Shown here piece by piece: positions 29,387 through 62,470 of a stretch of 64,000 bases of DNA. Made by a program: the position numbers and the translations under genes. Each line of letters opens with the position of its first letter. Within the stretch, counting starts at the first letter, position 1. The notes below the pieces were generated by a model, which saw only the letters and a program-made list of their open reading frames with translations, made no database searches and was not told the DNA's origin. The stretch spans positions 434,001 through 498,000 of the IMG/VR virus record IMGVR_UViG_3300017917_001342; one strand, 5' to 3'.

Positions 29387-29424
29387 GTTTTAGTCCTCCT
29401 ATACACCGCATAATAGCATAGATT

Positions 29425-29454
29425 AAACGAGCGTCAATCACAATGACGCTCGTT
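29425..29454 (-). terminator. 12-bp stem-loop between the AAA+ and VWA genes
   Basis: AAACGAGCGTCA-ATCACAA-TGACGCTCGTTT. Confidence 0.6.
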
Positions 29455-29469
29455 TTGTTGTCGTTGATC

Positions 29470-30666
29470 TTACATGCTCGGGATAAGATCGGTGTAACGC
29501 TTGGTGAACTCAACCCAATTCTTGAGTTTCGGTGCGTTGATCGGCAGCTTGTAAAGACCGAGCACAGTCTTAGCAGCCATAACAGCCAGTTCGTCCTCAA
29601 AGTTGTCCATGATGAACCGGAAGAACCGGTCGGTCATCTCGTGGAACTCAGTGAACGCCTTGGGGTTGGTCTTCACGTCGCGGCTAGCATCTTGCAGTTC
29701 GTAGCACAGCGCAGTGGTCAGCGCATACATGATGTCGATCTGCTTGCTGTTCAGCTTGGTGACCTTACCGCTAAGAATGTCTTTAGCAGCCGGCAGGTTA
29801 GCAGCCTGTTTGCGATAAGTCATAAACTTAACGCCCGGACCTTCCCCAACGGTACCTTTGATCAAGTCACCCAGCACTTCGGTCGGAAGATCGGTGTCAA
29901 CCAAGTCACCGTTGTCGTCGGGTTCTTGCAGCAGTTCGCTAGCAAAGTACCACGAACGCGGAGTTGCAAACGCATAGCTGTCGCCGCTGGGTTTGAACTG
30001 GTTCAGGTCGTTCGGTTGGAAGCTGAGGTAGCCAACAATGTCCTTGTGGACACGATTCAGCACAGCCCATTCTTGCCAATCGTCGAAGCTAACGTCCAGC
30101 GTCACGTGAGTGAAGCGGTTAGCCAGCGGCATCGGCATGTTGTATGCAACACCCTTGTCCTTAACACGGTTACCAGCAGCAACGATAACCACATCCTTAG
30201 GCAGCGTGTAAGTACCAATCTTACGGTTAAGGATGATCTGATAGGTTGCAGCTTGAACGCTGGGCGGAGCCGCGCTCATTTCGTCGAAGAACACCAGCGC
30301 ACGGCTGTTGGGATCAGTTGGCAAGTCCGACGGAGTGGACCAGCGGAAAACCTTGTCAGTCAGCGGCACACCAGATTCATCTTTAACAAGGTTACCGTCC
30401 TTGTCGTAGATTTTCACATCTGCCAGATACGGGATACCGCGCATGTCAGTGGGTTCCATCAGCGGCAGACGAATGTCGATCAGCGGACGATTTTGTTCGC
30501 GAGCAACTTCGGCAACAATGTCCGATTTACCAATGCCCGGAGGACCCCAAACGAACAGCGGACGCTTGCGATTCAAGCTATGGCGCATAGCCATCTTAAG
30601 GCGGGAGGGAGTGACGCTTGCAGTTTCAAGCATACGATTCTTAGTAGCAGTGTTAGCGTTAGCCAT
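29470..30666 (-). CDS. MoxR-like AAA+ ATPase
   Basis: Walker A GPPGIGKS, Walker B FFDEM, AAGNR, LANRF, ATPRSW; paired with a VWA gene. Confidence 0.88.
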   Translation of the reverse strand: MANANTATKNRMLETASVTPSRLKMAMRHSLNRKRPLFVWGPPGIGKSDIVAEVAREQNRPLIDIRLPLMEPTDMRGIPYLADVKIYDKDGNLVKDESGVPLTDKVFRWSTPSDLPTDPNSRALVFFDEMSAAPPSVQAATYQIILNRKIGTYTLPKDVVIVAAGNRVKDKGVAYNMPMPLANRFTHVTLDVSFDDWQEWAVLNRVHKDIVGYLSFQPNDLNQFKPSGDSYAFATPRSWYFASELLQEPDDNGDLVDTDLPTEVLGDLIKGTVGEGPGVKFMTYRKQAANLPAAKDILSGKVTKLNSKQIDIMYALTTALCYELQDASRDVKTNPKAFTEFHEMTDRFFRFIMDNFEDELAVMAAKTVLGLYKLPINAPKLKNWVEFTKRYTDLIPSM

Positions 30667-30702
30667 CTTGTGTGTCTCCGTAGTGTTGTTGTCGATGAGT
30701 TA

Positions 30703-30730
30703 CATTTAGCACATTATTAGATACTGTCAA
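30703..30730 (-). promoter_or_regulatory. Possible sigma70-type promoter for the AAA+ gene
   Basis: TTGACA-16-TAAATG preceded by TGTGC; the -10 is imperfect. Confidence 0.45.
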
Positions 30731-47666: not shown

Positions 47667-49685
47667 TCAATTGTAATCTAATACGATTTTAAATTCTCCA
47701 GAGGTACTAGACCCTGGATTTATAAATGCTTTGACACTGGTTGTAGATAATACTGGATATGACAATGTTGTTGTGTATAGACCCACTGTTGTTGGATCAA
47801 TTAATGCACCGTCCATTAATAAACCATGCACAGTGTCAGTGCCAATTTCAATGTTGCTGCTGTTGTCGTTGAATGCCTGTATGATTTCGATGTTTAATCT
47901 AGTCAAAGTTTTAGTCGGCGCTAGTATACCAACTGTAACAGGACTAGTACTGAGATAACTGCCGGTTGCAGTAAAACTATTCACTAGTGTTGTATCACCA
48001 GATGTAGTGTTGCCAACGTTTTGACCATTCTGACTTAGCCCTAGTTGCATCCATACAGTCGGACCGGTATCAACTGCTACATATGCTTGGTTGTGACCAG
48101 CACCGTCGTTATAAACAAACGCAATAGCACCTCGTGTGGGTGTTAGTGCATTTCTAGCTGCAATATCTTGTACAAAGTATCCAAACGCAACACCAGTTGG
48201 ACCTGTTGGACCTGTTAATTGGCTTAGACTTGATATTGACCATGCGATAAGGTCAACCTGATCACCTGCAACAGACGGTGCATTTAATGTAACAGTTATA
48301 CCATCATCTGCTGTGTACTCAGTTGGCGGTAATTTGAGTCCATTTACATACACATCTATATATGGTGCTGTATATAGAGCATTGAATATAGTCTGGCCGC
48401 TTGTAGCGGTGTAGTTATATTCTTGGTATGCACCAACTGCGGCCGGACCAGTTGGACCTGTTACATCGCTGGCAGCACCAGTTGGACCTATAAAACCCTG
48501 TGGACCAGTAGGACCAGTTACTACGCTGTCTGCGCCAGTCGGGCCAATAGGACCAGTAGGACCGCCTAACGGACCAGTGGGACCTGTAGCACCTACTCCT
48601 GTTGCTCCCGTAGCACCAGTTGGTCCAGTAGGACCTGCTGCACCACCTACGCCTAGACGTTGCCAATTTGCATTACCAAGTGTAGGGTTAATACAAATGT
48701 ATGCAGTGTTTGTGCCGATGTCTATCCAAAGACTACCGTAACTGTAACCAAATGCTTCATCATCGTAGATAGTAGGCGGTACTACACTGGTAAAATTGTT
48801 TAGAGGTCCTGATAAACTGCCTTGTGATAATTTTACTGCGCTGGTATTGTTTATTTTTATAAACAATGGCATAGCAAAATTATTTGGTTTAACTGCGGTT
48901 AGTTTTCCCGGTACAGTGGTACTTAGATATAGGACATCACCTGGATTACCAGGCAGTGTAGGTAAATCATAAAGTACTTTGCCTTTTGGTTCCCAGCTAA
49001 AGTAATCATATCCAGGAATGCCTAATTGTCTTACAGTACCAATTACATTAACAGTTGAAATGTCATCAGCAATTGCCAGCGCATAGGTGCCATCAGATTT
49101 AAGATAGATCTGATCGCCTATATCAAATCCATTGCTGGGTTGTAAAACAGTTAACAGATTCTGTTTAATGTTTCTAGCATTGAATTTGCTAATAACATCT
49201 TCTAAAAATCCCGGATAGGGTTGAAGAAAACTGTTGTATAAGGTTAGTGTATGGAATACTGGAATGCCATCTTCGTCTAACGCAAAAATAAAACCAGGCT
49301 CACCTGTTGCTGCAACACCGTCTGGAGCAGAAAACTGCTCATATCTTCCGGTATCTTCTATTGTACAAACCAGTGTTGTGCTGTTAGTTAATAGTGGGTC
49401 TATTGCAATGATCTGGCAGCATTTACCAGTGGATGCTTCCGCATACCACATGCCTACTTTGATATCTAATGCATTATAAACATAGAGTTGTTCGGTACTG
49501 AAACTGCTGTGGTTTTGTTGAGTTACAGCAGCAGTCATAATAAAACGATATGGTTGCGGTGCTGGCCCGCCAGCCCACCATTGATCTTCTCCGTATATAG
49601 GACCTTCGTCTACAGGCCAATACCCATCAGGTACAATACTGATATTGTCTACATATAACGTAATGATAGGAAGTATAGATGCCAT
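47667..49685 (-). CDS. Collagen-like tail fibre/virion appendage protein (672 aa)
   Basis: Central (Gly-Pro-Thr)n tract, followed by the YTATSGQT...VYVNG fibre module. Confidence 0.75.
48438..48653 (-). repeat. Gly-X-Thr collagen-like coding repeat
   Basis: [13 protein letters not shown]... interrupted triplet repeat. Confidence 0.9.
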
Positions 49686-49698: not shown

Positions 49699-50763
49699 TC
49701 ATGCTGTGAATATCAGCGTCACCCAGAGATATCCATTGCCGGATGCAGGTACACCTGTATTACCAGGTGACAATGCATATAAACTTGTACTGTTAACAGT
49801 AGTACTCAGCGCAGAATAGCTACCAGTTGTAGCACCAGATGGTATTGTTTGTCTAAATGCTCCGGCTGGTAATACACCCGGCCCGCCTTGACAAGATATC
49901 ATAACAGGATAGAGATTTCTGTTGTGATTTACAGTGATCTGTGTATCGCCCAGTCTTGTGATTTGACCTAATGTGATATTTGTTAAATTGTCAACATAGT
50001 CAGATGGCAATATTACACCGTCTGCAAACAGCAATCTGAAATTGATAAGCGATGTTGCAGCAGGGCCTGTTGCACCAGTTGGTCCTACAACACTAGAACC
50101 AGTTGCACCAGTTGGACCTGTAATTGTGCTAGCTGCACCAGTTGGGCCTTGATCTCCCTGTGGTCCTGTAGCACCTTGATCACCTTGACTACCAGTAGGA
50201 CCAGTTGGACCGCCTAAAGGACCAGTAGGACCAGTTACAGTACTATCTGCACCTTGAGGACCAGTTACGCCAGTAGGACCAGTTGGACCTAACGGACCAG
50301 GTGGGCCCATTGCACCACCGCCGCTACCACCGGATGGTAATGGATTGCTAGGAGCAATTGCGCCATAATTTAAAAGTATTTGAAGAACTTCGCCTACTAG
50401 ATAGGAATTACTTGGTGGTGGCACCAAATAGGTTCTGTCAATTTTTGCACGAACCCAAACATAGTTGCCAGAGAAACTATATGCATAGTTACCTGTATCA
50501 CCAGTTTGTCCTGTGGGATATGCAGGGTCTAGTGGATATTGTACATATGGTGCAGTTGTACCAATTGGTATATCAAACCAGTCGAGTTCACCCGGGTCTC
50601 TAGCTAGACTGCCCTGAATGTATATACGACCAGTAAAATTGCTAAGCGATATACTAACGGTATGATTGTTACCGATAGTGTTATTGTAGCCAGCGCCTTT
50701 TTGTTTCTGGCCTGTTACATTGATTTGTTCGTTGGTAGTTGATAAAAGAATTACACTGATCAT
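49699..50763 (-). CDS. Collagen-like virion protein (354 aa)
   Basis: Central GPT/GAT/GPQ tract; late promoter upstream. Confidence 0.75.
50055..50320 (-). repeat. Gly-X-Thr collagen-like coding repeat
   Basis: [30 protein letters not shown]... Confidence 0.9.
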
Positions 50764-51036: not shown

Positions 51037-51369
51037 TTATACACGAGGTTTTGGTTTTCTACCACGTTTGCGGCCAGTTGATCTGTTACTGCCATCTGCA
51101 TTTATGTTGTAGACTTCTGCGTATCTGTCTAAACTCATGCCTTCTATACTGGTAATTAGATCCATTGATATTTTTATTGCTGCTGAGGTATACGGGTCCC
51201 TCAGCAGCAAAATGTATCCATCTACAGCACCGTCGATTTTATCTATTACCATATCTCGATAATGATGAGTGACTGTTCCATATTTAGAATGCTGTGGTAT
51301 TTTTGCTGTAACCACAGTGTCTTCAACTAATACTCCTGATAGAATCAATCGTTCTATAACTGCTGTCAT
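51037..51369 (-). CDS. Hypothetical protein with basic C-terminal GRKRGRKPK motif
   Basis: ATGA overlap with the clpA stop. Confidence 0.7.
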   Translation of the reverse strand: MTAVIERLILSGVLVEDTVVTAKIPQHSKYGTVTHHYRDMVIDKIDGAVDGYILLLRDPYTSAAIKISMDLITSIEGMSLDRYAEVYNINADGSNRSTGRKRGRKPKPRV

Positions 51370-53660
51370 TCATTGACCTCAGTAATACTGGTAGAATCTA
51401 ACAATAGCAATTCTGTTTCATTAGTGAATTCCGGATTGCTAAGATAGTCAAAAACCAACTGCGAATCCTTTACAGTGATCATCACTGCACCACCGTTTTT
51501 CAATTTACCAAACAGTATTTCTTTACTGATAGGCTTTTTAACATTTTCTGCAATGACTCTCGACAGCGGTCTAGCACCCATCTTTTTGTCAAAGCCCTTG
51601 TCAATAAGCCACTGTTTAGCAGCAGGATCACAAATTATGTTAACATTCTTTTTAGCAGACAGTTCATTCATTTGATTGATAAACTTGTCAACAATGTGTT
51701 CCATATTTTCTTTAGCAAGGCTACCAAACCGTACTATTGCATCAAGACGGTTACGGAATTCGGGAGTAAAGTATCTATTGATTGCTTGAGTATCTTCGTC
51801 TCTCAACGCATTCTCACTACCAAACCCGATACGGTCTTTTTCCATATCTGCTGCACCTAGGTTACTGGTAAAGATAACAATTGCATTTCTTGCACTTGCA
51901 CTCTTACCTTGACTACCTGTCACAGTACCGCTATCCATCATAGCAAGGAACACGTTATAAACATCGGGGTGTGCTTTTTCGATTTCATCAAACAGCAACA
52001 CACAATGCGGATGTGTTTCTAATTCATTGATAAGAAGACCGCCACCTGCTCCACCGTCGCTGTATCCTACATAACCCGGAGGGCTACCTAGGAATTTACT
52101 GACAGTGTGTCGTTCTTGGAATTCGCTCATATCAAATTTAGTAAAGTGAATTCCCAGACTCTTTGCCAATTGTTTAGCAACTTCTGTTTTACCTACACCA
52201 CTTGGCCCACTAAACAGGAAACTACCTATAGTTTTGTCATTTTCACGTAGACCGCTACGGCTCATGTAGATTGCATCAGTTACACGATTAATTGCTTCGT
52301 CTTGTCCGAAGATCACTGTTTTAAGATCAGACTCTAAACGTTCTAGACGATCTGCTTCTTTACTCTTAACTGAAGTCACTGGCACTTTGGCAACACGGCT
52401 TACTTCTGCTTCGATTTCAGTTTTAGTAATAGTTTTAATACGTAGTTCTTCTGGGCGTATTTTTTGCCATGCTGCTGCACTGTCAATTACATCAATTGCT
52501 TTGTCTGGCAAAAATTTATCATGCATATGACGGCTAGTAAGTTCAACTGCTGCATCCAGTGCCGCGGTTTCATATTGCACGCCATGGAATTCTTCGTAGT
52601 ATTTGGCAATACCTCTGAGAATACGCTTGCTGTCCTCGATGCTGGGTTCAAAAATATCAAGTTTTTGGAAACGTCGTACCATTGCACGGTCTTTTTCAAA
52701 ATGCTTGCGATATTCTTCAGCAGTTGTACTACCTATGCAGCGAATGTCGCCTCGACTCAGAGCCGGTTTAAGCATGTTGGCAGCATCCATACTGCCTGAA
52801 CCACCGCCACTGCTACCTGCACCCATGATCATATGTATTTCATCAATGAACATAATGTGTTCAGGTAGTGCTGTAAACGCAGCAATGATATGCTTCATGC
52901 GTTCTTCAAAGTCACCGCGGAATTTTGTACCTGCTACTAGGCTTGCAATATCTAGATTCCAAATTGTGCAGTTAGCAAGACTTTCTGGTACATCGCCTTC
53001 AACAATGCGTTTTGCAAGACCTTCGACAATAACAGTTTTACCAACACCAGGGTCACCTGTCATAATGACATTGTGTTTGTTGCGTCTTGCAAGTATTTGA
53101 CAGATTTGTTCAACTTCGCGTTCACGTCCGATCAATGGGTCAATACGACCCGCTTCGGCTTTTGAATTAAGATTGATACAATATGTCTGCAATATTTCTA
53201 TAGCAGAATTTTCATCCATTGTTGATTGTTCTTCTGCTGCAACCTGATTTATCTGTGCAACTATTTTGTCTTTTGATGCAGAGTGCTGTTGAATGATCCA
53301 ACTTGCAGGACTATCTTGAATGCCATACAGTGCAAGGTAGATGTCTTCTGGACCAATTTCTTTTCTGCCACTAAACATGCTGTGTGTTTTGGCTTTTTTA
53401 ATAACCTGTGCAAGCAATGTAGTGTGTCTTGGTTGATATGAACCCTGTTTAACAATTACATGATTGCGATCATCGTTTAACCAATCGCTAGTATCTTTGA
53501 TCATTGCATCAAGATCGCCGCCTGTGCGTTTGATTAGTTTTTGAATAATACCATTTTCAAGCAGTCCAGCCAATAGATGTTCAAGAGTCACTAATTCGTG
53601 ATTCATGCTTGCAGCCAATTGGTATGCACGTTGAATAGTCTGTTCGAAGCTGTTTTCCAT
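51366..53660 (-). CDS. clpA: ClpA-type Hsp100 AAA+ unfoldase
   Basis: Clp N domain; NBD1 GDPGVGKT/FIDEIH; NBD2 GPSGVGKT/LLFDEIEKAHP; IGF ClpP-docking loop; no ClpB middle domain. Confidence 0.92.
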   Translation of the reverse strand: MENSFEQTIQRAYQLAASMNHELVTLEHLLAGLLENGIIQKLIKRTGGDLDAMIKDTSDWLNDDRNHVIVKQGSYQPRHTTLLAQVIKKAKTHSMFSGRKEIGPEDIYLALYGIQDSPASWIIQQHSASKDKIVAQINQVAAEEQSTMDENSAIEILQTYCINLNSKAEAGRIDPLIGREREVEQICQILARRNKHNVIMTGDPGVGKTVIVEGLAKRIVEGDVPESLANCTIWNLDIASLVAGTKFRGDFEERMKHIIAAFTALPEHIMFIDEIHMIMGAGSSGGGSGSMDAANMLKPALSRGDIRCIGSTTAEEYRKHFEKDRAMVRRFQKLDIFEPSIEDSKRILRGIAKYYEEFHGVQYETAALDAAVELTSRHMHDKFLPDKAIDVIDSAAAWQKIRPEELRIKTITKTEIEAEVSRVAKVPVTSVKSKEADRLERLESDLKTVIFGQDEAINRVTDAIYMSRSGLRENDKTIGSFLFSGPSGVGKTEVAKQLAKSLGIHFTKFDMSEFQERHTVSKFLGSPPGYVGYSDGGAGGGLLINELETHPHCVLLFDEIEKAHPDVYNVFLAMMDSGTVTGSQGKSASARNAIVIFTSNLGAADMEKDRIGFGSENALRDEDTQAINRYFTPEFRNRLDAIVRFGSLAKENMEHIVDKFINQMNELSAKKNVNIICDPAAKQWLIDKGFDKKMGARPLSRVIAENVKKPISKEILFGKLKNGGAVMITVKDSQLVFDYLSNPEFTNETELLLLDSTSITEVNE

Positions 53661-54175
53661 TAGCGTCCCTTTGTCAAAATAGCTTTAAGCCTAGCGTTCT
53701 TAGCGGCTTTTTTCTTTGCTAGCATAAGCTTAACTGGTCCTACACGATCGTCAATCAGTATTCCTTGCAAATGGTCAAATTCGTGCAAGAATATTCTTGC
53801 CCACCATTCATCAAAGTCAGTTACCTGTTGATTACCGTGTTCATCTCGATACATGGCTTTGATACGTTTGCTACGTGGTATATCTAACACAAGCCCTGGT
53901 ATGCTCAAACAGCCTTCTGGTTGTACAGACATTTCGTCGCTGGCTTCTATTACCACAGGATTAATAAAAACGTAGTCTTGTCCTTCGAGACTGATTACAA
54001 ACAAACTGAGATCACTACCAACCTGCGGTGCAGCTAAACCAACTCCGCCATGTTTTTTAAGTGTATCAAACATGTCGCGAATCAGTGTTTGATGATTGAC
54101 AATATCTTCCGGTTCAATGACAGTGGTCTTTTGCCTAAGTATGGCATTTGGTTTTTTAACGATATCTAATATCAT
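53660..54175 (-). CDS. def: Peptide deformylase
   Basis: GVGLAAPQ, EGCLS, HEFDH. Confidence 0.95.
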   Translation of the reverse strand: MILDIVKKPNAILRQKTTVIEPEDIVNHQTLIRDMFDTLKKHGGVGLAAPQVGSDLSLFVISLEGQDYVFINPVVIEASDEMSVQPEGCLSIPGLVLDIPRSKRIKAMYRDEHGNQQVTDFDEWWARIFLHEFDHLQGILIDDRVGPVKLMLAKKKAAKNARLKAILTKGR

Positions 54176-55044
54176 AAAGTTGGTTCGCCTCTTTGTTGTG
54201 CTATTGTTTTGATTTGCTCAAACTGTTCAACATTTAAATCTTTTGGTATACTGATGTTAACAGTGATAAACAAATCACCGCGTTGTCTTGCATTGTTGTG
54301 TACAGGCATACCGTTTCCGGCTACTCGTAAAATTGCACCAGTCTGTGTGCCTGCCGGAATGTTAATAGACAGATGTGTACCATCTATAGCTGTTAGCTCA
54401 CGCTTTGTTCCAACTATTGCAGATAGTGCATCTAACTTCAATGCCATGTGCAGATGCGGTCCATCTCTCCTAAAAACAGGATGATCGTTGATACTCACTG
54501 TTACAAACAAATCACCTGGTGGTAAATTGTTGATAGACTTGTCACCGTAACCTTGATAGCGCAATCGTGTACCATGTTGCACACCTGCTGGTATGTTGAC
54601 AACTATGTTTCTAGATTGGCCATTTACTTCAAAGTTTATCGGTAAACTTTTACCTGCAAATGCTTCTTCTAATGTGATATTCAGAGTAAATTGATAGTCT
54701 TTGTTTTTTACAGGATGTTGTTGTCTAAATGCCTGTCCAAAGAACTGATTGATCATGTCGTCAAATGGGTTACCATGACCAAAATCAAATGTAAACCCAC
54801 CTGGTCCAAACGGCGATCCGCCATTCATATTACCAAACTTGCGCTGTTGGTCATATTGAGCACGTTTTTGCGGGTCGCTTAATATATCATTGGCTTCGTT
54901 TATTTGTTTAAACTTAGCTTCAGCATCGGGATTATCTTTGTTGAGATCCGGATGCCATTTTTTTGCGAGATTGCGATACGCAGTTTTTATTTCATCCTGC
55001 GACGCAGAGTCTGATAATCCTAAAGTACTATAATGGTCTGTCAT
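54172..55044 (-). CDS. dnaJ: Class II DnaJ (CbpA-like) co-chaperone
   Basis: J domain with HPD, G/F-rich linker, C-terminal GDL/LRVAGNGMP domains; no zinc finger. Confidence 0.9.
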   Translation of the reverse strand: MTDHYSTLGLSDSASQDEIKTAYRNLAKKWHPDLNKDNPDAEAKFKQINEANDILSDPQKRAQYDQQRKFGNMNGGSPFGPGGFTFDFGHGNPFDDMINQFFGQAFRQQHPVKNKDYQFTLNITLEEAFAGKSLPINFEVNGQSRNIVVNIPAGVQHGTRLRYQGYGDKSINNLPPGDLFVTVSINDHPVFRRDGPHLHMALKLDALSAIVGTKRELTAIDGTHLSINIPAGTQTGAILRVAGNGMPVHNNARQRGDLFITVNISIPKDLNVEQFEQIKTIAQQRGEPTL

Positions 55045-55127: not shown

Positions 55128-55841
55128 GTGGCAGAATCGAGAAAAATACCAACATTTTCAAGAGCAGTACCTATTCTGGATGCATTGTTAAAGTATCTAA
55201 CTAGAACTTCTCCATTGATGTTAGCAGTGCATTTAATTTATATCAGCACTGCTAGTATATTCATAAGCATGGCATATGTTGTTAGTTTCCATTGGGAAAG
55301 TCTAGTACGACTATACGAAGAAGCACACGATATACAATCATTTTCTGCCAATTTGAAAACATCTGTAGAAAACGACAACAAAATCTACGGACACCTCAAT
55401 ACTATTATCAGCAATTCTGGAGGTATGCGTGCTTATGTATATCGCTATCACAACGGACTAGCTGCAATTTCAGGTGTGCCTTTTTTCTTTCAAACTATGA
55501 CACACGAAGTAATCGCCAATGGTGCAACTCGTATTATACAATTTGAACAGCGTATACCAGCAAGCATACATATGGCAATTAACAATGATTTTGTAGAAGA
55601 TAAATGTGCTATTATCGAAAATGCAGATAAAGATCCAAGCAGCCAAAACTATTACTTCTATCAAAGCAAGAACGCTAAGTCATTGATACGTTGTCCAATT
55701 TATATGGAAAATGGTGATTTGTTTGGATTTGTTGGAGTTGACTTTGCAGATCATATTCCTTCTGATACTAAGAAAACTGTAGATGAAATCAAAAACACTG
55801 CTAAAGATATAGGTAGATTATTCGCTACTACTGCCAAGTGA
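55128..55841 (+). CDS. T4 gpT-like holin candidate (single TMD plus GAF-like periplasmic domain)
   Basis: Amphipathic N-terminus, one hydrophobic span, C-terminal RCPIYMENGDLFGFVGVDF similar to T4 T SCPYFNLDNIYAGTITMYW. Start reassigned from 54963. Confidence 0.55.
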   Translation: MAESRKIPTFSRAVPILDALLKYLTRTSPLMLAVHLIYISTASIFISMAYVVSFHWESLVRLYEEAHDIQSFSANLKTSVENDNKIYGHLNTIISNSGGMRAYVYRYHNGLAAISGVPFFFQTMTHEVIANGATRIIQFEQRIPASIHMAINNDFVEDKCAIIENADKDPSSQNYYFYQSKNAKSLIRCPIYMENGDLFGFVGVDFADHIPSDTKKTVDEIKNTAKDIGRLFATTAK

Positions 55842-55871
55842 TTTTTTTAGGTAATCCGCCGTTTATGCCAT

Positions 55872-55877
55872 TAAATA
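55872..55877 (+). promoter_or_regulatory. Late promoter core TAAATA in the loop of an RBS-sequestering hairpin (55852-55897)
   Basis: TAATCCGCCGTTTATG ... CATAACGGATGGATTA flanks TAAATA; ATG at 55900. Confidence 0.65.
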
Positions 55878-55899
55878 TGTACATAACGGATGGATTAAC

Positions 55900-56622
55900 A
55901 TGCAGATTCTTATACCAATGAGCGGAGCCGGCAAGAGATTTGCCGATATGGGTTATCAAAAACCAAAACCTTTAATAGAGTTTTTTGGTAAACCTATGAT
56001 AGAACATGTGTTGGAAAATCTAGGTGCAGACAACGATTACATTCTCTGTGTGCAAAAAGCACACTATGATGCAGACCCAACTCTGTTCGAAAGATTAAAA
56101 ACCAAAGTTAAAAGTTTATCTATAGTTCTAGTAAACGGTGTAACACAGGGTGCAGCAGAAACCTGTCTGCTTGCAAAACAGCTATTGGATCTAGATAAAC
56201 CGTTGTTCATTGCCAACTGTGATCAAATGATGGTATGGGATCAAACACATTTTGAAAATTGGTTTGCAGCAGAGAACCTGGATGGTGTTATGTTTGTGTT
56301 TGACAGCGACAGTACAAAAAACAGTTATGTAGAATTAGATAGCAACGGTATTGCTGTTAGAACTGCTGAGAAACAGGTTATCAGTCCCTATGCTACCAAC
56401 GGCATCTATGTATGGAAACGTGCAGGCGACTTTGTCTGGGCAGCCGAAAAGATGATTGCAGATGATATACGTGTAAACAACGAATTCTATGTGTGTCCTG
56501 TATACAATGAAAACATTGCAAGAGGTGATCGTATAGGCATCTACTATCCAACTGAGCATTGGCCTATTGGAACACCAGAAGACCTGGACATCTACATAAA
56601 GGCACACTATGAAACTGTTTGA
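55900..56622 (+). CDS. Sugar-phosphate nucleotidyltransferase (BcbE-like)
   Basis: IPMSGAGKRF...PKPLI, GAAET, ANCDQ, EKQVIS, NEFYV, GTPEDL. Confidence 0.85.
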   Translation: MQILIPMSGAGKRFADMGYQKPKPLIEFFGKPMIEHVLENLGADNDYILCVQKAHYDADPTLFERLKTKVKSLSIVLVNGVTQGAAETCLLAKQLLDLDKPLFIANCDQMMVWDQTHFENWFAAENLDGVMFVFDSDSTKNSYVELDSNGIAVRTAEKQVISPYATNGIYVWKRAGDFVWAAEKMIADDIRVNNEFYVCPVYNENIARGDRIGIYYPTEHWPIGTPEDLDIYIKAHYETV

Positions 56623-56941
56623 TCCTGACGAATTTAAAGGCGGATGGTTTATAGGAGATTTTGAACCTAGTATTTGGCGTACAACTGGTTTTGAAATAGG
56701 TTATAAACATCATATTGCAGGCGAAGCATGGCCTGCACACTACCATGAACACATGGACGAAGTTACTTTTCTTCTAGAAGGTACAATGCAAATTTGCAAT
56801 CAGACCATAACTGGTCCTATTATATTTTTAATAGGCCGTAATGAAATCGCTGACCCCGAATTTATAACAGACTGCAAGGTATTCATAATAAAAACTCCGT
56901 CTGTACCCGGAGATAAAGTTTTAATTGGAGATAAAACATGA
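56609..56941 (+). CDS. Cupin-fold protein (possible sugar epimerase/isomerase)
   Basis: GGWFIGDFEP, HYHEHMDEVTFLLEG cupin metal motif. Confidence 0.75.
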   Translation: MKLFDPDEFKGGWFIGDFEPSIWRTTGFEIGYKHHIAGEAWPAHYHEHMDEVTFLLEGTMQICNQTITGPIIFLIGRNEIADPEFITDCKVFIIKTPSVPGDKVLIGDKT

Positions 56942-58161
56942 GCGCAATTGACATTGTGAGAGACGAAAAAAATCTTGCAAAATATTTTTATGTAACATAC
57001 GACGTTGAAAGTACAAAAAGCGTATACGATGCTGCCTGGAATATTGCAGTCGGACAAAGTATAGGTAATCCAAATACTCGCAGTATTTGGGAAACTGACG
57101 ATATGATCGAAGCATACAGTGCTAAGATTTTACGCAATAGTAATTTTGAAAAGAAAAAAGGCAAAGTTGTAATTGCATACCCCAATGCTAATATTGACTG
57201 GGACACCGATGGTATTGCACAGCTATTGTGTATAGTACAAGGTGGTCAGGTTGATATTGACAGCATTAAAAAATGCAGAGTGTTGGATATAGAAATACAT
57301 CCTCAAATAATAGACAGCCACTTTAAAAAGCCTGCGCATGGTATAACAGGTATGCGCGAGTTCACTAACACCTATGGTAAACCAATGTTCGGCGGTATCG
57401 TAAAACCAAAAACAGGTATTACTCCTCAGGTACTGTTGGACATGACCAAAGAACTTGTAGAGGGTGGTGTTAACTTTATCAAAGAAGATGAAATTCTCAG
57501 CAACCCTGCTGTATGTAGATTGCAAGATCGAGTAGAACTTATCAGCAATTACATACAAGGTAAGAACGTAGTATACTGTTTCTGTATCAACAGTGATCCT
57601 GCATACGTAGTAGACCGCGCACGCTTTGTTGCACAGAATGGCGGTAATGGTGTGCATGTTAATATTTGGAGCGGATTAGGCAGCTATCGCAGTATACGCA
57701 ACGCAGACCTCGGTCTGTTTATACACTATCAAAAGAGCGGCGACAAAGTAATTACAGGTAAACAAAATCCCTTTGGTATTGAGTGGACAGTGCTTTGTAA
57801 ACTGGCTGCAATGTGTGGTGTAGACACTATTCATGCAGGTATGTGGGGCGGATATCTCAGCGACGACGAAGAGGAACTGCGTAAAACACTTGCTGTACTG
57901 CATGATAGAAACGTATTACCTGCACTAAGCTGTGGTATGCATCCTGGTATTGTTAACGCAACATCTGAGAAATTTGGTGTAGATTTCCTTGCTAACGTTG
58001 GCGGTGCTATTCACGGACACCCAGGTGGTACACTTGCTGGCGCTAAGGCTATGCGTCAAGCAATAGATAAGACTCCGGGTCCAGAATTCAAAACTGCAAT
58101 TGACAAATGGGGTTATGAAACCAACGGTGGTTCAATGCCGGAATGGGTATTGGAATTCTGA
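56938..58161 (+). CDS. RuBisCO-like protein (form IV RLP)
   Basis: GGIVKPKTG, FIKEDE, DTIHAG, LSCGMHP, VGGAIHGHP; the Lys334 position is Tyr. Confidence 0.9.
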   Translation: MSAIDIVRDEKNLAKYFYVTYDVESTKSVYDAAWNIAVGQSIGNPNTRSIWETDDMIEAYSAKILRNSNFEKKKGKVVIAYPNANIDWDTDGIAQLLCIVQGGQVDIDSIKKCRVLDIEIHPQIIDSHFKKPAHGITGMREFTNTYGKPMFGGIVKPKTGITPQVLLDMTKELVEGGVNFIKEDEILSNPAVCRLQDRVELISNYIQGKNVVYCFCINSDPAYVVDRARFVAQNGGNGVHVNIWSGLGSYRSIRNADLGLFIHYQKSGDKVITGKQNPFGIEWTVLCKLAAMCGVDTIHAGMWGGYLSDDEEELRKTLAVLHDRNVLPALSCGMHPGIVNATSEKFGVDFLANVGGAIHGHPGGTLAGAKAMRQAIDKTPGPEFKTAIDKWGYETNGGSMPEWVLEF

Positions 58162-58667
58162 TAGAAAGGTATAGGATTTTGCCATCTGTAATAATTGCAC
58201 ATAGAGGGTTGTTGGAGGGACCAGATGTAAATCTGCAGAATCGTCCAGATCAGGTGAAGAAAGCAATTGGCTTAGGCTTTCAAGTTGAAGTTGATGTGTG
58301 GTATATAGATGGCAAATGGTTTTTAGGACACGACGGACCTGAGCATAGTATAGATTGGCAGTTTCTAGCTGATCACAGCAATGACCTTTGGATACACTGT
58401 AAAAATCTAAATGCGTTCTTTGAGCTAAAAACTGATAGATCACATCAGTTAAATTACTTTTATCACGACAGTGACGCAGTTGTGTTAACAGCTAAAAACC
58501 ACGTTTGGACATATTTTGGTAAACGCGAAACCATGCATCGCAGCAGTGTATGTGTAATGCCGGAAGTTAGTTATGAGTGGGAAGAAATAGTACAAATGGC
58601 AACAAACAATCAATGGTTTGCCATTTGTACGGATTACCCAAGAAAGCTCAAGGAATGTCTCGCGTAG
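58143..58667 (+). CDS. GDPD/PI-PLC-like phosphodiesterase-fold protein (start uncertain, possibly TTG 58179)
   Basis: IIAHRG, GFQVEVDVW, FLGHD, LWIHCKN. Confidence 0.7.
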   Translation: MGIGILIERYRILPSVIIAHRGLLEGPDVNLQNRPDQVKKAIGLGFQVEVDVWYIDGKWFLGHDGPEHSIDWQFLADHSNDLWIHCKNLNAFFELKTDRSHQLNYFYHDSDAVVLTAKNHVWTYFGKRETMHRSSVCVMPEVSYEWEEIVQMATNNQWFAICTDYPRKLKECLA

Positions 58668-59317
58668 CACTTTGCTTTGCAGGTCTACCAAGAATGTCTA
58701 CAATCAGCACAGATAGCTGGCGTAGATTAATATCTCAACACCATACAGATGTTTTTGTACATACTTGGGCTGATAATGATCCGCAACAGCTACAGCAATC
58801 TATTGCTGCAACCTATGCACCAAAAGAATTGATTGTTGAACAACAACGTCAATTTGATACAGCTATCTATACTGATCGCATATGGGCATACCGTAGTTTT
58901 CCCAACAATGTATTGAGCATGTGGTACAGCATAGCACAGAGCCTACAGATGGCTGATAGATATGCTGCAAAATACAACATCACATATGATTATGTTTGTC
59001 GTGCTAGATTTGACTGGCACTGTAATCAATTTGATTTGCAACCATTTGATGGCTTAACAGTACCAGATGATCCCGGTTTAAGTGGACATCATTTTCAACA
59101 TAGAGGCCACTGGTATGTTGCACATAACGATCAATTTGGCTATGGCAGCATGAATGTCATGCGCGATTATGGTGAGACCTTTTATCGCATACCATGGTTA
59201 TATCAAATCGACAAAATAGACTTTTGCAGTGAATTATTCCTTACAACAAATATGATTACAAAAAAAATTCCTGTAAAATTACAAAAGGGATGGGTTTATA
59301 GGATGGTACGCGAATGA
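58655..59317 (+). CDS. Glycosyltransferase-like protein
   Basis: VALCFAGLPR, DVFVHTW, SMWYS, YDYVCRARFD, NDQF; start moved to the ATG at 58655 (AAGGA RBS). Confidence 0.5.
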   Translation: MSRVALCFAGLPRMSTISTDSWRRLISQHHTDVFVHTWADNDPQQLQQSIAATYAPKELIVEQQRQFDTAIYTDRIWAYRSFPNNVLSMWYSIAQSLQMADRYAAKYNITYDYVCRARFDWHCNQFDLQPFDGLTVPDDPGLSGHHFQHRGHWYVAHNDQFGYGSMNVMRDYGETFYRIPWLYQIDKIDFCSELFLTTNMITKKIPVKLQKGWVYRMVRE

Positions 59318-60387
59318 AAATAGCTGTATATACAATTGCACTTAATGAAATAAAACACTGTGAACGCTGGGCAGAATCTGTAAAAGATGCAGACTATCGA
59401 ATCGTTTTAGACACTGGTAGTACAGATGGTACAGTAGAAAAACTGCGCGAACTAGGTGTAACTGTATACGAACAGCAGTTTACACCTTGGCGTTTTGATG
59501 TTGCACGCAATGCTGCATTGAATTGTGTACCAGAAGATGCTGATATCTGTATAAGCCAAGACATGGATGAATTTTTAGAGCCGGGATGGCGTGCAAAAAT
59601 GGAAGCAGTTTGGCAGAAAGGTCAAACTACTAGATTGGCTTACACCTATGTATTTGATTATAGACCAGGTGGTAAGAATGACGGCTATCGTATGGATAAG
59701 ATTCATGCTAGACAGGGTTACGAATGGCGCAGGCCAGTGCATGAAACTGTATGGAGCACACTGAGTTACGAAAACATTGCAGAAGATCTGTCTATTGTAT
59801 TGAATCAAATACAAGACAGAAACAAAACAACTCGCAGCAACTATTTGCCATTGATGGCTATGGCCACAGCAGAAAATCCCAATGACAGCCAATTGAGCTT
59901 TTGGTATGGACGCGAGTTAATGTACGCAAATCAACATGAAGCTGCTATCACAGAATTGAAACGCTATCTTGATCTAGAAACCAGTCGTTGGCCAGTAGAA
60001 CGTAGCGAAGCTATGATTTATCTGTCTAGACTAACAGACAGCAGCAAATTTGACTATTTGCACAGGGCATTGATCTGTGCGCCAGAACGCAGACAGGTAT
60101 GGTTAGAACTTGCTAGATATTATTACAGTAAACAAGACTGGCATGGATTGCTATGGGCCTGTGGTAGCGGGCTTGAACACAGCCGCAGGGACAACAGCTA
60201 TCTTGATCATGCAGATGCCTGGGGCAATCAACTACACGATTTTGGAAGCATTGCAGCAGCTAACTTAAAATGGTACGAAAAAGCTGTGGAATGGTGCCAA
60301 TTAGCGATAAACATACAACCAACTGATGATAGATTGCGTGCAAACTTAAATTGGATGCAAAGCAAACTAGGAGAGATTTCAAAATGA
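59314..60387 (+). CDS. GT2 glycosyltransferase with C-terminal TPR domain
   Basis: IAVYTIALNE, LDTGSTDGT, FDVARNAAL, QDMDE, followed by TPR-like helices. Confidence 0.85.
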   Translation: MKIAVYTIALNEIKHCERWAESVKDADYRIVLDTGSTDGTVEKLRELGVTVYEQQFTPWRFDVARNAALNCVPEDADICISQDMDEFLEPGWRAKMEAVWQKGQTTRLAYTYVFDYRPGGKNDGYRMDKIHARQGYEWRRPVHETVWSTLSYENIAEDLSIVLNQIQDRNKTTRSNYLPLMAMATAENPNDSQLSFWYGRELMYANQHEAAITELKRYLDLETSRWPVERSEAMIYLSRLTDSSKFDYLHRALICAPERRQVWLELARYYYSKQDWHGLLWACGSGLEHSRRDNSYLDHADAWGNQLHDFGSIAAANLKWYEKAVEWCQLAINIQPTDDRLRANLNWMQSKLGEISK

Positions 60388-61448
60388 AAATAGCTATATA
60401 CGGTCCGGCAAAAAACGAATTCAAACATGTCGAAGCATGGTATGACAGTTGCAAAGATGCAGACATTATCTGCGTTGCAGACACTGGTAGTACAGATGGT
60501 ACACCAGAATTAATGCGACAACTTGGTGTACAAGTTACAGATGTACGTATATCACCTTGGCGATTTGATGATGCATTTAATACAGCAATGTATCTGGTGC
60601 CCGATTGGGTCGATGTTTGTATTCGATTAGACACAGACGAGCGTCTTGTAGAAGGTTGGAGAGCAGCGTTAGAAGCAGCATGGACACCTGAAACAACACG
60701 TTTACGTTACCCTTATGTATGGAATTGGAACCCAGATGGCACACCAGGCCGTACATGGTATGGCGATCGTATCCACAAGCGAGTTGGTTACAGATGGATG
60801 GGTGCAACACACGAAGGGCTTGTTAGCAGGTTGCCGGAAATTCAAACCTATACAGACACTGTGAAGATACATCATTTCCCGGATGTAAAAAACAAATCGG
60901 GCGATTTGCCATTGCTGTTAGAATCTGTAAAAGAGTGGCCGCATGATGCTAGAATCCGTGCTTACCTTGCTAGAGAATACATGTATGCTAGAAACTACGA
61001 GAAAGCAGCAGAAACCTACAAAGAATTCCTAGGAATGAGCTGGGACACTGCCGAACGCTGTCAGGCAATGACATCACTGGCACAAGCAGAACCAGAAAAT
61101 AAAATCTACTGGTTAAGGCAAGCTGCGTATGAAGTACCAACACACAGAGAACCTCTAGTATATCTTGCACAACACTATTACGACAAAAGTGAATGGCAAA
61201 AGTGTTATGAATATGCACACAAGGCTTTGGCAATTACCAGACATCCTATGGATTATACCTGCACACCGGAAGCATGGGGATGGCAACCACACGATTTGTT
61301 AAGCATTGCAGCATGGAATCTCAAGCTGTACAAAGAAAGTCTCGAACATGCTAAACTGGCATTGTCACATGCTACACATGATGTAAGGCTGCAAAACAAT
61401 GTCAAGCTCATTGAAGAATTTATAGCTAAGAATCTCAGTGACAGTTGA
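60384..61448 (+). CDS. GT2 glycosyltransferase with C-terminal TPR domain (paralogue)
   Basis: IAIYGPAKNE, DTGSTDGT, LDTDE, HEGL, TPR helices; start moved to the ATG at 60384. Confidence 0.85.
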   Translation: MKIAIYGPAKNEFKHVEAWYDSCKDADIICVADTGSTDGTPELMRQLGVQVTDVRISPWRFDDAFNTAMYLVPDWVDVCIRLDTDERLVEGWRAALEAAWTPETTRLRYPYVWNWNPDGTPGRTWYGDRIHKRVGYRWMGATHEGLVSRLPEIQTYTDTVKIHHFPDVKNKSGDLPLLLESVKEWPHDARIRAYLAREYMYARNYEKAAETYKEFLGMSWDTAERCQAMTSLAQAEPENKIYWLRQAAYEVPTHREPLVYLAQHYYDKSEWQKCYEYAHKALAITRHPMDYTCTPEAWGWQPHDLLSIAAWNLKLYKESLEHAKLALSHATHDVRLQNNVKLIEEFIAKNLSDS

Positions 61449-61463: not shown

Positions 61464-61640
61464 ATGAGAGCAACTGAATTCATAAATGAGTCAGGCGGAG
61501 CAGGCCGCGTTGTGCCAGGTGTGAATACCACACCTGATGTTGGACCGGATGAAATACCAAAGCAAGCTGCAAAGCTAGGTATGAAAACTGATAGAGACGG
61601 TAGACCGCCTATTGCTAGAACTGATGGGAAAATTGAATAA
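61464..61640 (+). CDS. 58-aa late protein (absent from the ORF track)
   Basis: Translates as MRATEFINESGGAGRVVPGVNTTPDVGPDEIPKQAAKLGMKTDRDGRPPIARTDGKIE*; bounded by a late promoter and a terminator. Confidence 0.8.
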   Translation: MRATEFINESGGAGRVVPGVNTTPDVGPDEIPKQAAKLGMKTDRDGRPPIARTDGKIE

Positions 61641-61641: not shown

Positions 61642-61668
61642 AAAAAAGGGCGCCTAAGCGCCCTTTTT
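61642..61668. terminator. Bidirectional rho-independent terminator
   Basis: AAAAAA-GGGCGC-CTAA-GCGCCC-TTTTT between convergent genes. Confidence 0.9.
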
Positions 61669-61954: not shown

Positions 61955-62470
61955 TTATGGTGTAGTCTTGCTCCACCATTTGTCCCAAGGAAAGCTAATT
62001 TCTGTATCGGTTGATTCAGTTGCGCTGTAGTTAACTATAAAGTCACTTTCGACGTTGTCAACCAATACTGCAAATTTTGTAGATTTATACCAAACATCGT
62101 CCCAGATGTTTGACATAGGCATGCAGCCACTTTGCCAATCTTTTTTGATCCAATTAAAAACAGTTGGATCATTTACATGATTGACAATGAGAATATTTTT
62201 TGGTGTACAAGGTTTCCAATTATTGTTGCAATCTAAACCAAATGCATCCTCTGCCATCCATAGGTTAGATTCAGCCGAATCGATATGTAGCTGTGTGTTG
62301 AGAGTGTAACAAGGTACATCAAACCATTCACTGATGAGCGCAGCAGGTAATGTACCGTTCTTAACAAGACCTACGACGTAGTCTGGTTTCCAGTTGTTGC
62401 AGTGCATCTGTTGAACAATGTCTAAACATTGTGCATGAACATCTTTATATGTAAATGCTGTTGCGGCCAT
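61955..62470 (-). CDS. Type I phosphoribosyltransferase-fold protein with degenerate PRPP loop
   Basis: WKPDYVVGL...GTLPAALIS, KNILIV; the expected VDDxxxTG motif reads VNHVNDP. Confidence 0.65.
   Translation of the reverse strand: MAATAFTYKDVHAQCLDIVQQMHCNNWKPDYVVGLVKNGTLPAALISEWFDVPCYTLNTQLHIDSAESNLWMAEDAFGLDCNNNWKPCTPKNILIVNHVNDPTVFNWIKKDWQSGCMPMSNIWDDVWYKSTKFAVLVDNVESDFIVNYSATESTDTEISFPWDKWWSKTTP

Follow-up and report, generated by a model that had tools for sequence, protein, structure and literature searches.

Why would a giant phage carry a homologue of RuBisCO in the middle of a set of sugar-handling genes, and what could such a protein do there? We addressed this for a 64,000-nucleotide stretch (here, the window) of the IMG/VR record IMGVR_UViG_3300017917_001342, positions 434,001 to 498,000, where an earlier note, made from the sequence alone, had described seven overlapping genes behind a late promoter and had read them as a complete phage pathway that makes an unusual, possibly branched or rearranged, NDP-sugar and attaches it to virion proteins. 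We find that the genes are as the note described them, and that its reading of them is supported in part: the RuBisCO-like protein (RLP) is not a carboxylase and belongs to a widely shared four-gene cassette, also found in SAR11 and other microbes, that most likely makes a nucleotide-activated sugar.

Gene content and boundaries of the unit

All seven open reading frames (ORFs) exist on the + strand, with successive overlaps of 14, 4, 19, 13, 4 and 4 nt, and their domain assignments match those of the note. They encode a nucleotidyltransferase (NT), a cupin, the RLP, a mini GDPD-type phosphodiesterase (PDE), a DUF7796 protein and two GT2-TPR glycosyltransferases (Table 1). Two starts were revised, as the DUF7796 gene most likely begins at ATG 58655 and not at GTG 58577, and the second GT2-TPR gene begins at ATG 60384 and not at TTG 60351. 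Whereas the note ended the unit at these seven genes, one further ORF on either side is conserved and syntenic in the four closest relatives, and the unit is therefore probably one of nine genes that ends at a strong hairpin.

Table 1. Features of the unit and of the neighbouring collagen-like genes, with positions in the window.
Position	Strand	Size	Assignment	Basis
47667-49685			Gly-Pro-Thr collagen-like repeats
49699-50763			Gly-Pro-Thr collagen-like repeats
55128-55841	+	237 aa	Conserved upstream ORF, probable first gene of the unit	N-terminal hydrophobic helix; no Pfam or other family hit; start taken as GTG 55128; 54-65% identical in the four closest relatives
55900-56622	+		NT of the RmlA/GalU class (sugar-phosphate to NDP-sugar)	PF00483, 7.9e-11; phrog_3980, 1e-61; PDB 4evw, 1.9e-16
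56609-56941	+	110 aa	Mini cupin, candidate sugar(-phosphate) isomerase	No Pfam hit; canonical cupin motif 1 (G-x5-H-x-H-x4-E-x6-G) with an H44/H46/E51 metal motif invariant in the alignment; AlphaFold pLDDT 95; best fold hits 7zvm and 7zvy (archaeal mini phosphomannose isomerases), TM about 0.67-0.71
56938-58161	+	407 aa	RLP, non-carboxylating, probable Mg-dependent enolase/isomerase of a keto-sugar phosphate	PF00016, 2.5e-39, plus PF02788; below every NCBIfam cutoff
58143-58667	+	174 aa	Mini GDPD-type phosphodiesterase	No Pfam hit; GDPD catalytic motif HRG..EN..E.D..GHD; PDB GDPD 7e0v, 1e-4; hhalign to E. coli UgpQ, 2.6e-4
58655-59317	+		DUF7796, predicted GT-A fold, GT6-like glycosyltransferase	PF25072, 9.4e-10; AlphaFold pLDDT 94, pTM 0.92; top 50 PDB fold hits essentially all GT-A glycosyltransferases, nearly all GT6, led by BoGT6a 4ayl, 9e-7
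59314-60387	+		GT2-TPR glycosyltransferase a	PF00535, 1.1e-6, plus sub-threshold TPR; phrog_13126, 3e-88; PDB SunS, 9.6e-5, and GmaR, 2.9e-3
60384-61448	+		GT2-TPR glycosyltransferase b, paralogue of a	GT2 plus TPR; 38% identical to a over 355 aa, starting MKIA; phrog_13126, 4e-91
61464-61640	+	58 aa	Conserved ORF	59-67% identical in the four closest relatives, downstream of b
61643-61668		11-bp stem	G+C-rich hairpin, probable bidirectional terminator closing the unit	6 GC pairs in the stem; flanked by A and T runs

The late promoter proposed in the note has no support in our data. TATAAATA occurs at 55092 but is not enriched in the window (4 found, 6 expected), and ATTAAATATG occurs 30 nt upstream of the NT gene and upstream of one other gene only.

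The active site of the RuBisCO-like protein

To ask whether the RLP could fix CO2, we aligned it to 2cwx and compared its active site over 123 viral and cellular homologues. It keeps the Mg/carbamate triad (K201, D203 and E204), K175, K177, H327 and the P1 phosphate cradle, with S379, G381, G403 and G404 also retained, whereas E60G, T65N, W66P, N123G, T173I, H294Q, R295K, H298D, K334Y and G380C are invariant replacements, or nearly so, across these homologues. Public sources name the homologues ‘ribulose-bisphosphate carboxylase large chain’, viral rbcL is reported as a carbon-fixation auxiliary metabolic gene (PMC12615777, PMC11160803) and the best-scoring HMM is indeed that of form III RuBisCO. 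However, its score of 191 bits is far below the cutoff of 497, no small subunit, PRK or AMP-pathway genes are nearby, and the host range includes heterotrophs (SAR11). A role in carbon fixation is thus all but excluded, and databases that call this a carbon-fixation gene are probably wrong.

A salvage or catabolic module, which would recycle SAM- or nucleotide-derived pentoses during infection, is also very unlikely. The combination of RLP and cupin, with a HAD protein in some loci, parallels MtnW/MtnX/MtnD of methionine salvage and the RLP-cupin pair of the R. rubrum MTA-isoprenoid shunt, but MtnW NCBIfam scores are far below cutoff (129 versus 409 and 98 versus 514), the neighbours are glycan genes and not mtn genes, and the most constant partner, the NT, has no place in those pathways.

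Gene linkage across viruses and cells

The co-occurrence of RLP homologues with the NT and the cupin had been set beforehand as a point on which the note's reading could fail, and it held. Among 79 other viral loci, the NT occurs in 78, the cupin in 72, the PDE in 71 and DUF7796, often as several paralogues, in 42. Among 43 cellular loci, from SAR11, Verrucomicrobia, Nonomuraea, Azospirillum, CPR and DPANN, the NT occurs in 38, the PDE in 29 and the cupin in 14, and in 9 cellular loci, from DPANN, Planctomycetota and Verrucomicrobiota, a full-length PF03009 GDPD replaces the mini PDE. After dereplication at 80% identity (73 clusters), the NT lies within 1.5 kb of the RLP in 35 of 39 viral and 29 of 34 cellular representatives, across more than 20 gene orders. 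Fusions link the same genes (NT-cupin in 22 ORFs, with the cupin C-terminal, HAD-NT in 6, NT-PDE in 1 and PDE-DUF7796 in 1), and the tree interleaves viral and cellular sequences. This association is far beyond chance. Culturable carriers of the cassette are Nonomuraea rosea JCM 17326 and Azospirillum oleiclasticum RWY-5-1-1.

The neighbourhoods, in viruses and cells, are sugar-nucleotide and glycan clusters, with SDR epimerase/dehydratases, DegT aminotransferases, FkbM/TylF and sugar C-methyltransferases, UDP-GlcNAc 2-epimerase, UDP-Glc/GDP-Man dehydrogenase, GT2, GT4 and GT9. By contrast, the GT2-TPR pair accompanies the cassette in only 5 of 80 viral loci, and only in the closest relatives, so that the coupling proposed in the note is lineage-specific.

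This context bears on where the sugar would go. It is possible, but less likely than transfer to virion proteins, that the same activated donor decorates host cell-envelope glycans (LPS, capsule, S-layer) during infection, for example to block superinfection or the adsorption of progeny to debris. Cellular copies sit in envelope-glycan islands, as in a Pelagibacter locus next to a GT9 heptosyltransferase, a CMP-sugar synthetase-like gene and a HAD-NT, cyanophage clusters with NT, PDE and DUF7796 lie among LPS-type genes, and most viral loci carry ordinary GT2, GT4 or DUF7796 transferases and not GT2-TPR. In this phage, however, the transferases next to the cassette bear TPRs and have the protein/peptide glycosyltransferases SunS and GmaR as nearest solved relatives, and the operon is embedded among virion and fibre genes.

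Transfer to modified bases of phage DNA, to evade restriction, is very unlikely. Phage sets of NT, sugar isomerase and glycosyltransferase for DNA glycosylation are known (a related preprint came up in our literature search), and the Nonomuraea island has a deoxynucleoside-kinase-like and a SAH-hydrolase-like gene next to the cassette. However, the cassette is common in cellular envelope-glycan clusters of SAR11, CPR and DPANN, no base-modifying enzymes (hydroxymethylase and the like) are adjacent in the window, and the GT2-TPR proteins resemble protein glycosyltransferases.

Proposed pathway and its relation to known systems

We interpret the region as a phage glycan-decoration operon built around a mobile cassette of NT, cupin, RLP and GDPD-type PDE, a reading that we consider somewhat more likely than not. 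What the analysis establishes is that the RLP cannot carboxylate while retaining its Mg-carbamate and phosphate-binding residues, that the four genes travel together through phages, bacteria and archaea inside sugar-nucleotide and glycan gene clusters, and that the operon also encodes three glycosyltransferases, of which DUF7796 is assigned from its predicted fold. The chemistry, the acceptor and the timing of expression in this uncultured phage are, on the other hand, inferred from sequence, predicted structure and gene context alone. In this view, the RLP would bind a keto-sugar phosphate and enolise or isomerise it on Mg2+, as every characterised member of the superfamily does, to yield an uncommon sugar phosphate; the metal cupin would carry out a follow-up aldose-ketose or epimer isomerisation, mirroring the cupin half of bifunctional type II phosphomannose isomerase/GDP-mannose pyrophosphorylases, whose NT-cupin order is reproduced by the natural fusions; and the NT would convert the product into an NDP-sugar. 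The GDPD-type enzyme would perform a phosphodiester step that we cannot place, but that is linked to the NT/transferase side because the enzyme persists in cyanophage clusters that lack the RLP and occurs fused to DUF7796. DUF7796 and the two GT2-TPR enzymes would then transfer the sugar(s) to proteins, plausibly the collagen-like Gly-Pro-Thr fibre proteins encoded 5-8 kb away.

Not every part of the note's pathway is carried by these data. No kinase or phosphomutase that would give an anomeric sugar 1-phosphate lies in the window, and HAD_2 domains fused to the NT occur only in some relatives, so the claim of completeness is not supported; neither are the claims that virion proteins are the acceptors and that the sugar is branched. 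The cupin matches no one subfamily, as hhalign to the E. coli ManC cupin gives an E value of 0.16 and nothing to RfbC.

An alternative that we regard as unlikely, although not negligible, is that the NT activates an open-chain ketol or polyol phosphate at a primary phosphate, in the style of CDP-ribitol, CDP-glucitol or CDP-ME. The RLP, with the cupin, or RibB in other phages, would make a 1-deoxy- or rearranged ketose phosphate, and its installation as a phosphodiester-linked substituent would explain the constant GDPD-type partner. In cyanophage S-SKS1 the homologous NT is fused to a genuine DHBP synthase (RibB), whose product carries a primary and not an anomeric phosphate, which fits an NDP-ketol/polyol donor better than a classical NDP-sugar. 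In R. rubrum, an RLP followed by a cupin gives DXP, pairs of ketose-phosphate cytidylyltransferase and SDR reductase exist (PMC10918830), SDRs are found near 22 of 79 viral and 13 of 43 cellular loci, and the NTs have weak IspD-family hits. However, known ketose/polyol-phosphate NTs are PF01128, whereas this NT is PF00483 and is hit by RfbA/GalF (E. coli RfbA hits cassette NTs down to 1e-10) while IspD hits none, no Dxr, IspD, IspF or RibB is found in 123 RLP neighbourhoods, and DUF7796 has the predicted fold of a classical NDP-sugar glycosyltransferase.

Parts of the unit have counterparts in known systems. Characterised RLPs, namely the DK-MTP-1-P enolase MtnW/YkrW, the R. rubrum MTRu-1-P isomerase, which is followed by a cupin methylsulfurylase, and the 3-oxo-isoapionate-4-P decarboxylase OiaX, share the fold, the Mg site, the P1 phosphate cradle and the loss of carboxylase residues, but our RLP scores far below each family's cutoff, its set of replaced residues is different, and their known roles are all catabolic or salvage, whereas this one sits with an NT and glycosyltransferases. 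Type II phosphomannose isomerase/GDP-mannose pyrophosphorylases (ManC/CpsB, AlgA) likewise combine an RmlA-class NT with a metal cupin, in the order found in the fusions, but the cupin here is half the size, has no significant sequence match to that of ManC, and comes with an RLP and a GDPD-type enzyme as extra obligatory partners. The glycan clusters of the cultured cyanophages S-CAM9 and S-SKS1 have a homologous NT (35-46% identity), a mini-GDPD (8.5e-60 in S-CAM9) and three DUF7796 paralogues each, but no RLP or cupin, and their NT is fused to a HAD_2 domain in S-CAM9 or to the DHBP synthase in S-SKS1, which suggests that the precursor-forming enzyme is exchangeable. SunS- and GmaR-type enzymes share with our GT2-TPR proteins a GT-A (GT2) catalytic domain followed by a helical-repeat, substrate-binding region, at a similarity of only about 1e-4, and phage-encoded glycosyltransferases that act on capsid or tail proteins are documented, as in mycobacteriophages (cited in PMC11256854), although here the donor sugar would be made by a phage-encoded RLP cassette.

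Phage RLPs as such are not new. Jaffe et al. 2019 (Mol Biol Evol; PMC6389311) described about 80 of these ‘form IV-like’ RuBisCO homologues, some on large phages, that lack carboxylase residues and group with Beckwithbacteria (CPR) proteins, and our genome scan recovers a Beckwithbacteria homologue (49% identity) inside the same clade. That paper left their function ‘unclear’ and did not report the gene neighbourhood, and as our literature search found no report of the gene context or of an anabolic role, the cassette context and the implied anabolic role appear to be new. Here, the clade is shown to be part of an NT-cupin-RLP-GDPD cassette that is also present in SAR11, Verrucomicrobia, Actinobacteria, Azospirillum and DPANN.

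The seven-gene unit and its genomic setting

The plus strand between 55.9 and 61.45 kb holds seven tightly packed open reading frames (ORFs), and searches with Pfam, NCBIfam and PHROGs identify among their products a PF00483 nucleotidyltransferase (NT), a RuBisCO large-subunit homologue (RuBisCO-like protein, RLP), a DUF7796 protein and two GT2+TPR proteins. The two proteins without a family hit were resolved by alignment: one, of 110 aa, has a canonical cupin motif 1 with invariant H44, H46 and E51, whereas the other, of 174 aa, carries the GDPD catalytic signature HRG..EN..E.D..GHD, which matches solved GDPDs and E. coli UgpQ over the same stretch. The observation made in the earlier note, that of a run of overlapping genes that couples an RLP to an NT and to GT2-TPR proteins, is thus confirmed, with refined start codons at 58655 for the DUF7796 gene and at 60384 for the second GT2-TPR gene, and with gene overlaps of 14, 4, 19, 13, 4 and 4 nt. 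A 237-aa ORF upstream and a 58-aa ORF downstream are conserved and syntenic in the four nearest relatives, and a strong hairpin closes the unit.

The late promoter proposed in the earlier note could not be confirmed. The T4-type late promoter TATAAATA is not enriched, and a k-mer screen of upstream regions, with ATTAAATATG, returned only two exact sites, a number too small to give statistical support to a phage promoter element.

The unit lies on a 518,643-bp IMG/VR contig, where flanking genes encode virion and fibre proteins, a Clp-type ATPase and a peptide deformylase, and its G+C content is like that of the rest of the window. The Clp protein is closest to those of Sinorhizobium phage Phosso (469 kb) and Agrobacterium phage Atu_ph07 (490 kb), with 45-49% identity, which places the contig near that megaphage group. 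Phosso, the nearest cultured megaphage, keeps the DnaJ-like/deformylase/Clp trio but has no comparable operon nearby, and no clean 'empty site' could be defined by synteny.

Coordinates of features in the window and in two cultured cyanophages
Record	Coordinates	Strand	Feature	Observation
Window	15-8909	+	ORF of 2964 aa	Very long; TTG start near the window edge, so possibly longer
Window	9661-9670		Decamer ATTAAATATG	30-35 nt upstream of the plus-strand gene start at 9696; possible promoter element
Window	28001-30720		Local G+C rise	0.49 against about 0.40; coincides with long ORFs on both strands
Window	29443-30720	+	ORF of 425 aa	Within the G+C rise
Window	29470-30666	-	ORF of 398 aa	Within the G+C rise
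Window	42819-47597	-	ORF of 1592 aa	Very long
Window	47667-49685 and 49699-50763	-	Two tail-fibre-like proteins	Collagen-like G-X-Y runs rich in Gly-Pro-Thr, 7-9 triplets each
Window	51366-55044	-	DnaJ-like protein, peptide deformylase and 764-aa Clp-family ATPase	Trio also adjacent in Phosso
Window	55870-55879		Decamer ATTAAATATG	30-35 nt upstream of the plus-strand NT gene start; possible promoter element
Window	61643-61668		Hairpin	Closes the unit
Window	61955-62470	-	ORF of 171 aa just past the terminator	Weak PHROG match to a phosphoribosyl transferase (2.3e-6, C-terminal 40 aa only); no established relation to the operon
Synechococcus phage S-CAM9 (KU686205)	9043-9501		Mini-GDPD homologue	8.5e-60 to the family profile; annotated only as a 96-aa hypothetical protein; ORF appears truncated in the record
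Synechococcus phage S-SKS1 (HQ633071)	7001-8428		NT fused to a bona fide DHBP synthase (RibB) domain	Unusual architecture flanked by three DUF7796 paralogues

The active site of the RuBisCO-like protein and its gene neighbourhood

The best solved relative of the RLP is the Pyrococcus horikoshii form III RuBisCO (2cwx, 1.4e-41), and the alignment to it lets the classical residues be read off. Whereas K175, K177, K201, D203, E204, H327, S379, G381, G403 and G404 are kept, E60G, T65N, W66P, N123G, T173I, H294Q, R295K, H298D, K334Y and G380C are replaced, and an extra invariant arginine (R48) appears. This signature is invariant or nearly so in 80 viral and 43 cellular homologues, and is therefore a selected, specific active site and not the result of decay. 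The retained residues are those that bind Mg2+ through the carbamylated lysine, stabilise an enediolate and hold the C1 phosphate, whereas the lost ones are needed for CO2 addition, hydration and loop-6 closure. On its active-site residues, the RLP is not a carboxylase.

To test whether the association with other genes is conserved, which the earlier note had set as the condition that could refute its reading, we scanned IMG/VR and obtained more than 100 loci, of which 80 were kept, at 46-100% identity. A scan of one genome per prokaryotic species found 43 cellular loci, which include a complete Pelagibacter chromosome, many SAR11 single-cell genomes, a complete Verrucomicrobiae chromosome, the isolates Nonomuraea rosea and Azospirillum oleiclasticum, CPR (Beckwithbacteria, Saccharibacteria) and DPANN archaea. 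GenBank phages hold no RLP homologue by megablast or tblastn, and the clade is known only from metagenomes.

Partners of the RLP in other viral loci (profile HMMs) and in cellular loci
Partner	Other viral loci (of 79)	Cellular loci (of 43)
NT	78	38
Cupin	72	14
Mini-GDPD / PDE	71	29
DUF7796	42	14
SDR	22	13
HAD	8	1

Nine cellular loci that lack the mini-GDPD carry a full-length PF03009 GDPD 0.7-4 kb from the RLP. After dereplication at 80% RLP identity (73 clusters), the NT lies within 1.5 kb of the RLP in 35 of 39 viral and 29 of 34 cellular representatives, in more than 20 different gene orders and orientations. Natural fusions are NT-cupin (22), HAD-NT (6), NT-PDE (1) and PDE-DUF7796 (1), and the RLP tree interleaves viral and cellular sequences, needing at least 4-8 switches. 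Such conservation through rearrangement, fusion and transfer across domains is strong evidence for one pathway.

In viral loci, the cassette is surrounded by SDR NDP-sugar epimerase/dehydratases, FkbM- and TylF-type methyltransferases, UDP-GlcNAc 2-epimerase, UDP-Glc/GDP-Man dehydrogenase, GT2 and GT4, whereas cellular loci have GT2, GT9 heptosyltransferase, a DegT-type aminotransferase, a sugar C-methyltransferase and a CMP-sugar synthetase-like gene. These are sugar-nucleotide tailoring and glycan-assembly genes, and not Calvin-cycle, AMP-pathway or methionine-salvage genes. Contigs binned as giant-virus MAGs, which may be true giant viruses or large phages (our loci L018, L023, L027, L035, L038 and L053), carry the cassette with NT and cupin fused, and one of them (L035; IMGVR GVMAG-M-3300010158-59, 201 kb) adds a TPP-dependent enzyme, an HMGL-like protein, a HAD and a eukaryote-type PI-PLC X/Y protein. 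In the culturable actinomycete Nonomuraea rosea JCM 17326 (NZ_BAABDQ010000069), the cassette, with a GT2, a SAH-hydrolase-like NAD protein and a deoxynucleoside-kinase-like protein, lies between integrase and transposase genes, next to a radical SAM gene, and looks like a mobile island.

Partner proteins and a proposed mechanism

The NT belongs to the RmlA/GalU class of sugar-1-phosphate nucleotidyltransferases (PF00483), scoring 42.4 bits against a gathering score of 21.2, and its PMSGAGKRF segment aligns to the N-terminal G-x-G-x-R nucleotide loop of 4evw, the best structure; its substrate is inferred from family alone. E. coli RfbA and GalF detect cassette NTs, whereas E. coli IspD finds none, and the score to the IspD-type polyol/ketose-phosphate cytidylyltransferases (PF01128) is 18 bits against a gathering score of 27. 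The cupin models confidently (pLDDT 95), and its best fold matches are the 105-115-aa archaeal phosphomannose isomerases, followed by generic cupins, which are also all that a profile search of the PDB lists. The mini-GDPD motif is invariant and matches GDPDs, but the protein is only about 150-174 aa, compared with a full TIM barrel of about 240 aa in glycerophosphodiester phosphodiesterases (PF03009), and has no Pfam hit.

Sequence comparisons of DUF7796 with the PDB, with the first GT2-TPR protein and with WcaE gave nothing, and only its predicted fold was informative. It models at pLDDT 94 and pTM 0.92, and its top 50 fold matches are essentially all GT-A glycosyltransferases, nearly all of family GT6 (BoGT6a, human GTA/GTB; 1e-6 to 1e-5, TM 0.5-0.59), although the usual DXD position reads R-x-D, with R116 and D118 invariant. 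The two GT2-TPR proteins are 38% identical paralogues with GT2 and TPR hits, and their only solved relatives by sequence are SunS, a peptide S-glycosyltransferase (9.6e-5), and GmaR, a flagellin glycosyltransferase (2.9e-3).

The NT also has 35-46% identical homologues in cultured cyanomyoviruses. S-CAM9 has a HAD_2-NT, a mini-GDPD and three DUF7796 paralogues, whereas S-SKS1 has an NT fused to a genuine DHBP synthase (5.4e-65) and three DUF7796 paralogues; neither has an RLP or a cupin. The NT, mini-GDPD and DUF7796 proteins, the last predicted to be transferases, therefore form a backbone in which the precursor-forming enzyme is exchangeable: RLP+cupin, RibB or HAD. Both RibB and RuBisCO-family enzymes work on ribulose phosphates through Mg-bound enediolates, which suggests, by inference only, a pentulose-phosphate origin for the donor.

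What the analysis establishes is a non-carboxylating but intact RLP active site, an almost constant linkage to an NT and a usual linkage to a cupin and a GDPD-type enzyme, a glycan-cluster context and the presence of three predicted glycosyltransferases in this operon. The chemistry, in contrast, is inferred: the RLP would enolise or isomerise a keto-sugar phosphate, the cupin would isomerise the product, the NT would make the NDP derivative and the GT6-like and GT2-TPR enzymes would transfer it to protein, whereas the phosphodiesterase step cannot be placed. The product, the acceptor and the timing of expression are likewise not shown by these data. The two collagen-like fibre proteins are plausible acceptors by analogy, as such repeats are O-glycosylated on Thr in other systems. 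A variant in which the donor is an NDP-ketol or polyol, installed as a phosphodiester, is retained as an alternative, but is weakened by the family of the NT, by the GT6-like predicted fold and by the absence of Dxr, IspD, IspF and RibB from all 123 RLP neighbourhoods, which also gives no support to an MEP-like continuation of the pathway. The interpretation in the earlier note, of a complete phage pathway that makes an unusual NDP-sugar and attaches it to virion proteins, is partly supported.

A further possibility, which we hold only tentatively, is that the RLP catalyses the committed step in the synthesis of a so far undescribed nucleotide-activated sugar, possibly deoxy, rearranged or branched, that would decorate surfaces of some of the most abundant microbes (SAR11, CPR, DPANN) and of their large viruses. 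This would be the first biosynthetic (anabolic, glycan-directed) role for the RuBisCO superfamily, and would also mean that many 'viral rbcL' carbon-fixation auxiliary metabolic genes are misassigned. As the cassette moves repeatedly between viruses and cells and sits in surface-glycan islands, it is probably part of the phage-host arms race over cell and virion surfaces in SAR11-type plankton and in episymbiotic CPR/DPANN.

Comparison with known RuBisCO homologues and sugar-activation enzymes

[quoted passage not shown] The active site and the gene context say otherwise: H294Q, K334Y, E60G, N123G, R295K, H298D, T65N and W66P, which are invariant in 123 homologues, set the protein apart from bona fide RuBisCO of forms I-III, and the form III HMM scores 191 bits against a cutoff of 497. 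Jaffe et al. 2019 reported about 80 divergent RLPs on phage contigs, including a phage of about 200 kb, that group with Beckwithbacteria, and left their function open, whereas the GOS study had already seen unassigned RuBisCO-homologue branches. We found more than 100 IMG/VR homologues, and a Beckwithbacteria homologue lies in the same tree, which was built without the sequences of Jaffe et al. Our literature searches found no paper that links an RLP to a nucleotidyltransferase, a cupin or glycan synthesis in viruses or SAR11.

The NT-then-cupin order of the 22 fusions is that of type II PMI/GDP-mannose pyrophosphorylases (ManC/AlgA), although profile comparison of the cupin with the E. coli ManC cupin (E 0.16) and with RfbC (RmlC) is not significant. 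The RLP itself belongs to the RuBisCO superfamily, or form IV in the broad sense, with PF00016 at 2.5e-39, PF02788 at 2e-7 and K182/D184/E185 kept, but all NCBIfam RuBisCO and RLP models score far below their cutoffs, including those for the MtnW/YkrW DK-MTP-1-P enolase (129.2 bits against 409 for NF007095 and 97.8 against 513.6 for TIGR03332) and for the OiaX 3-oxo-isoapionate-4-phosphate decarboxylase (148 against 700 for NF042437). Whereas every characterised RLP works in salvage or catabolism, a conserved RLP-NT-cupin-phosphodiesterase cassette inside glycan clusters points to a new reaction class for a very heavily studied enzyme superfamily, one made directly testable by three culturable carriers and two cultured cyanophages with part of the system. 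What differs from the known members of this superfamily is a mobile, RLP-containing, putative sugar-activation cassette, coupled here to three predicted glycosyltransferases in a phage of about 518 kb.
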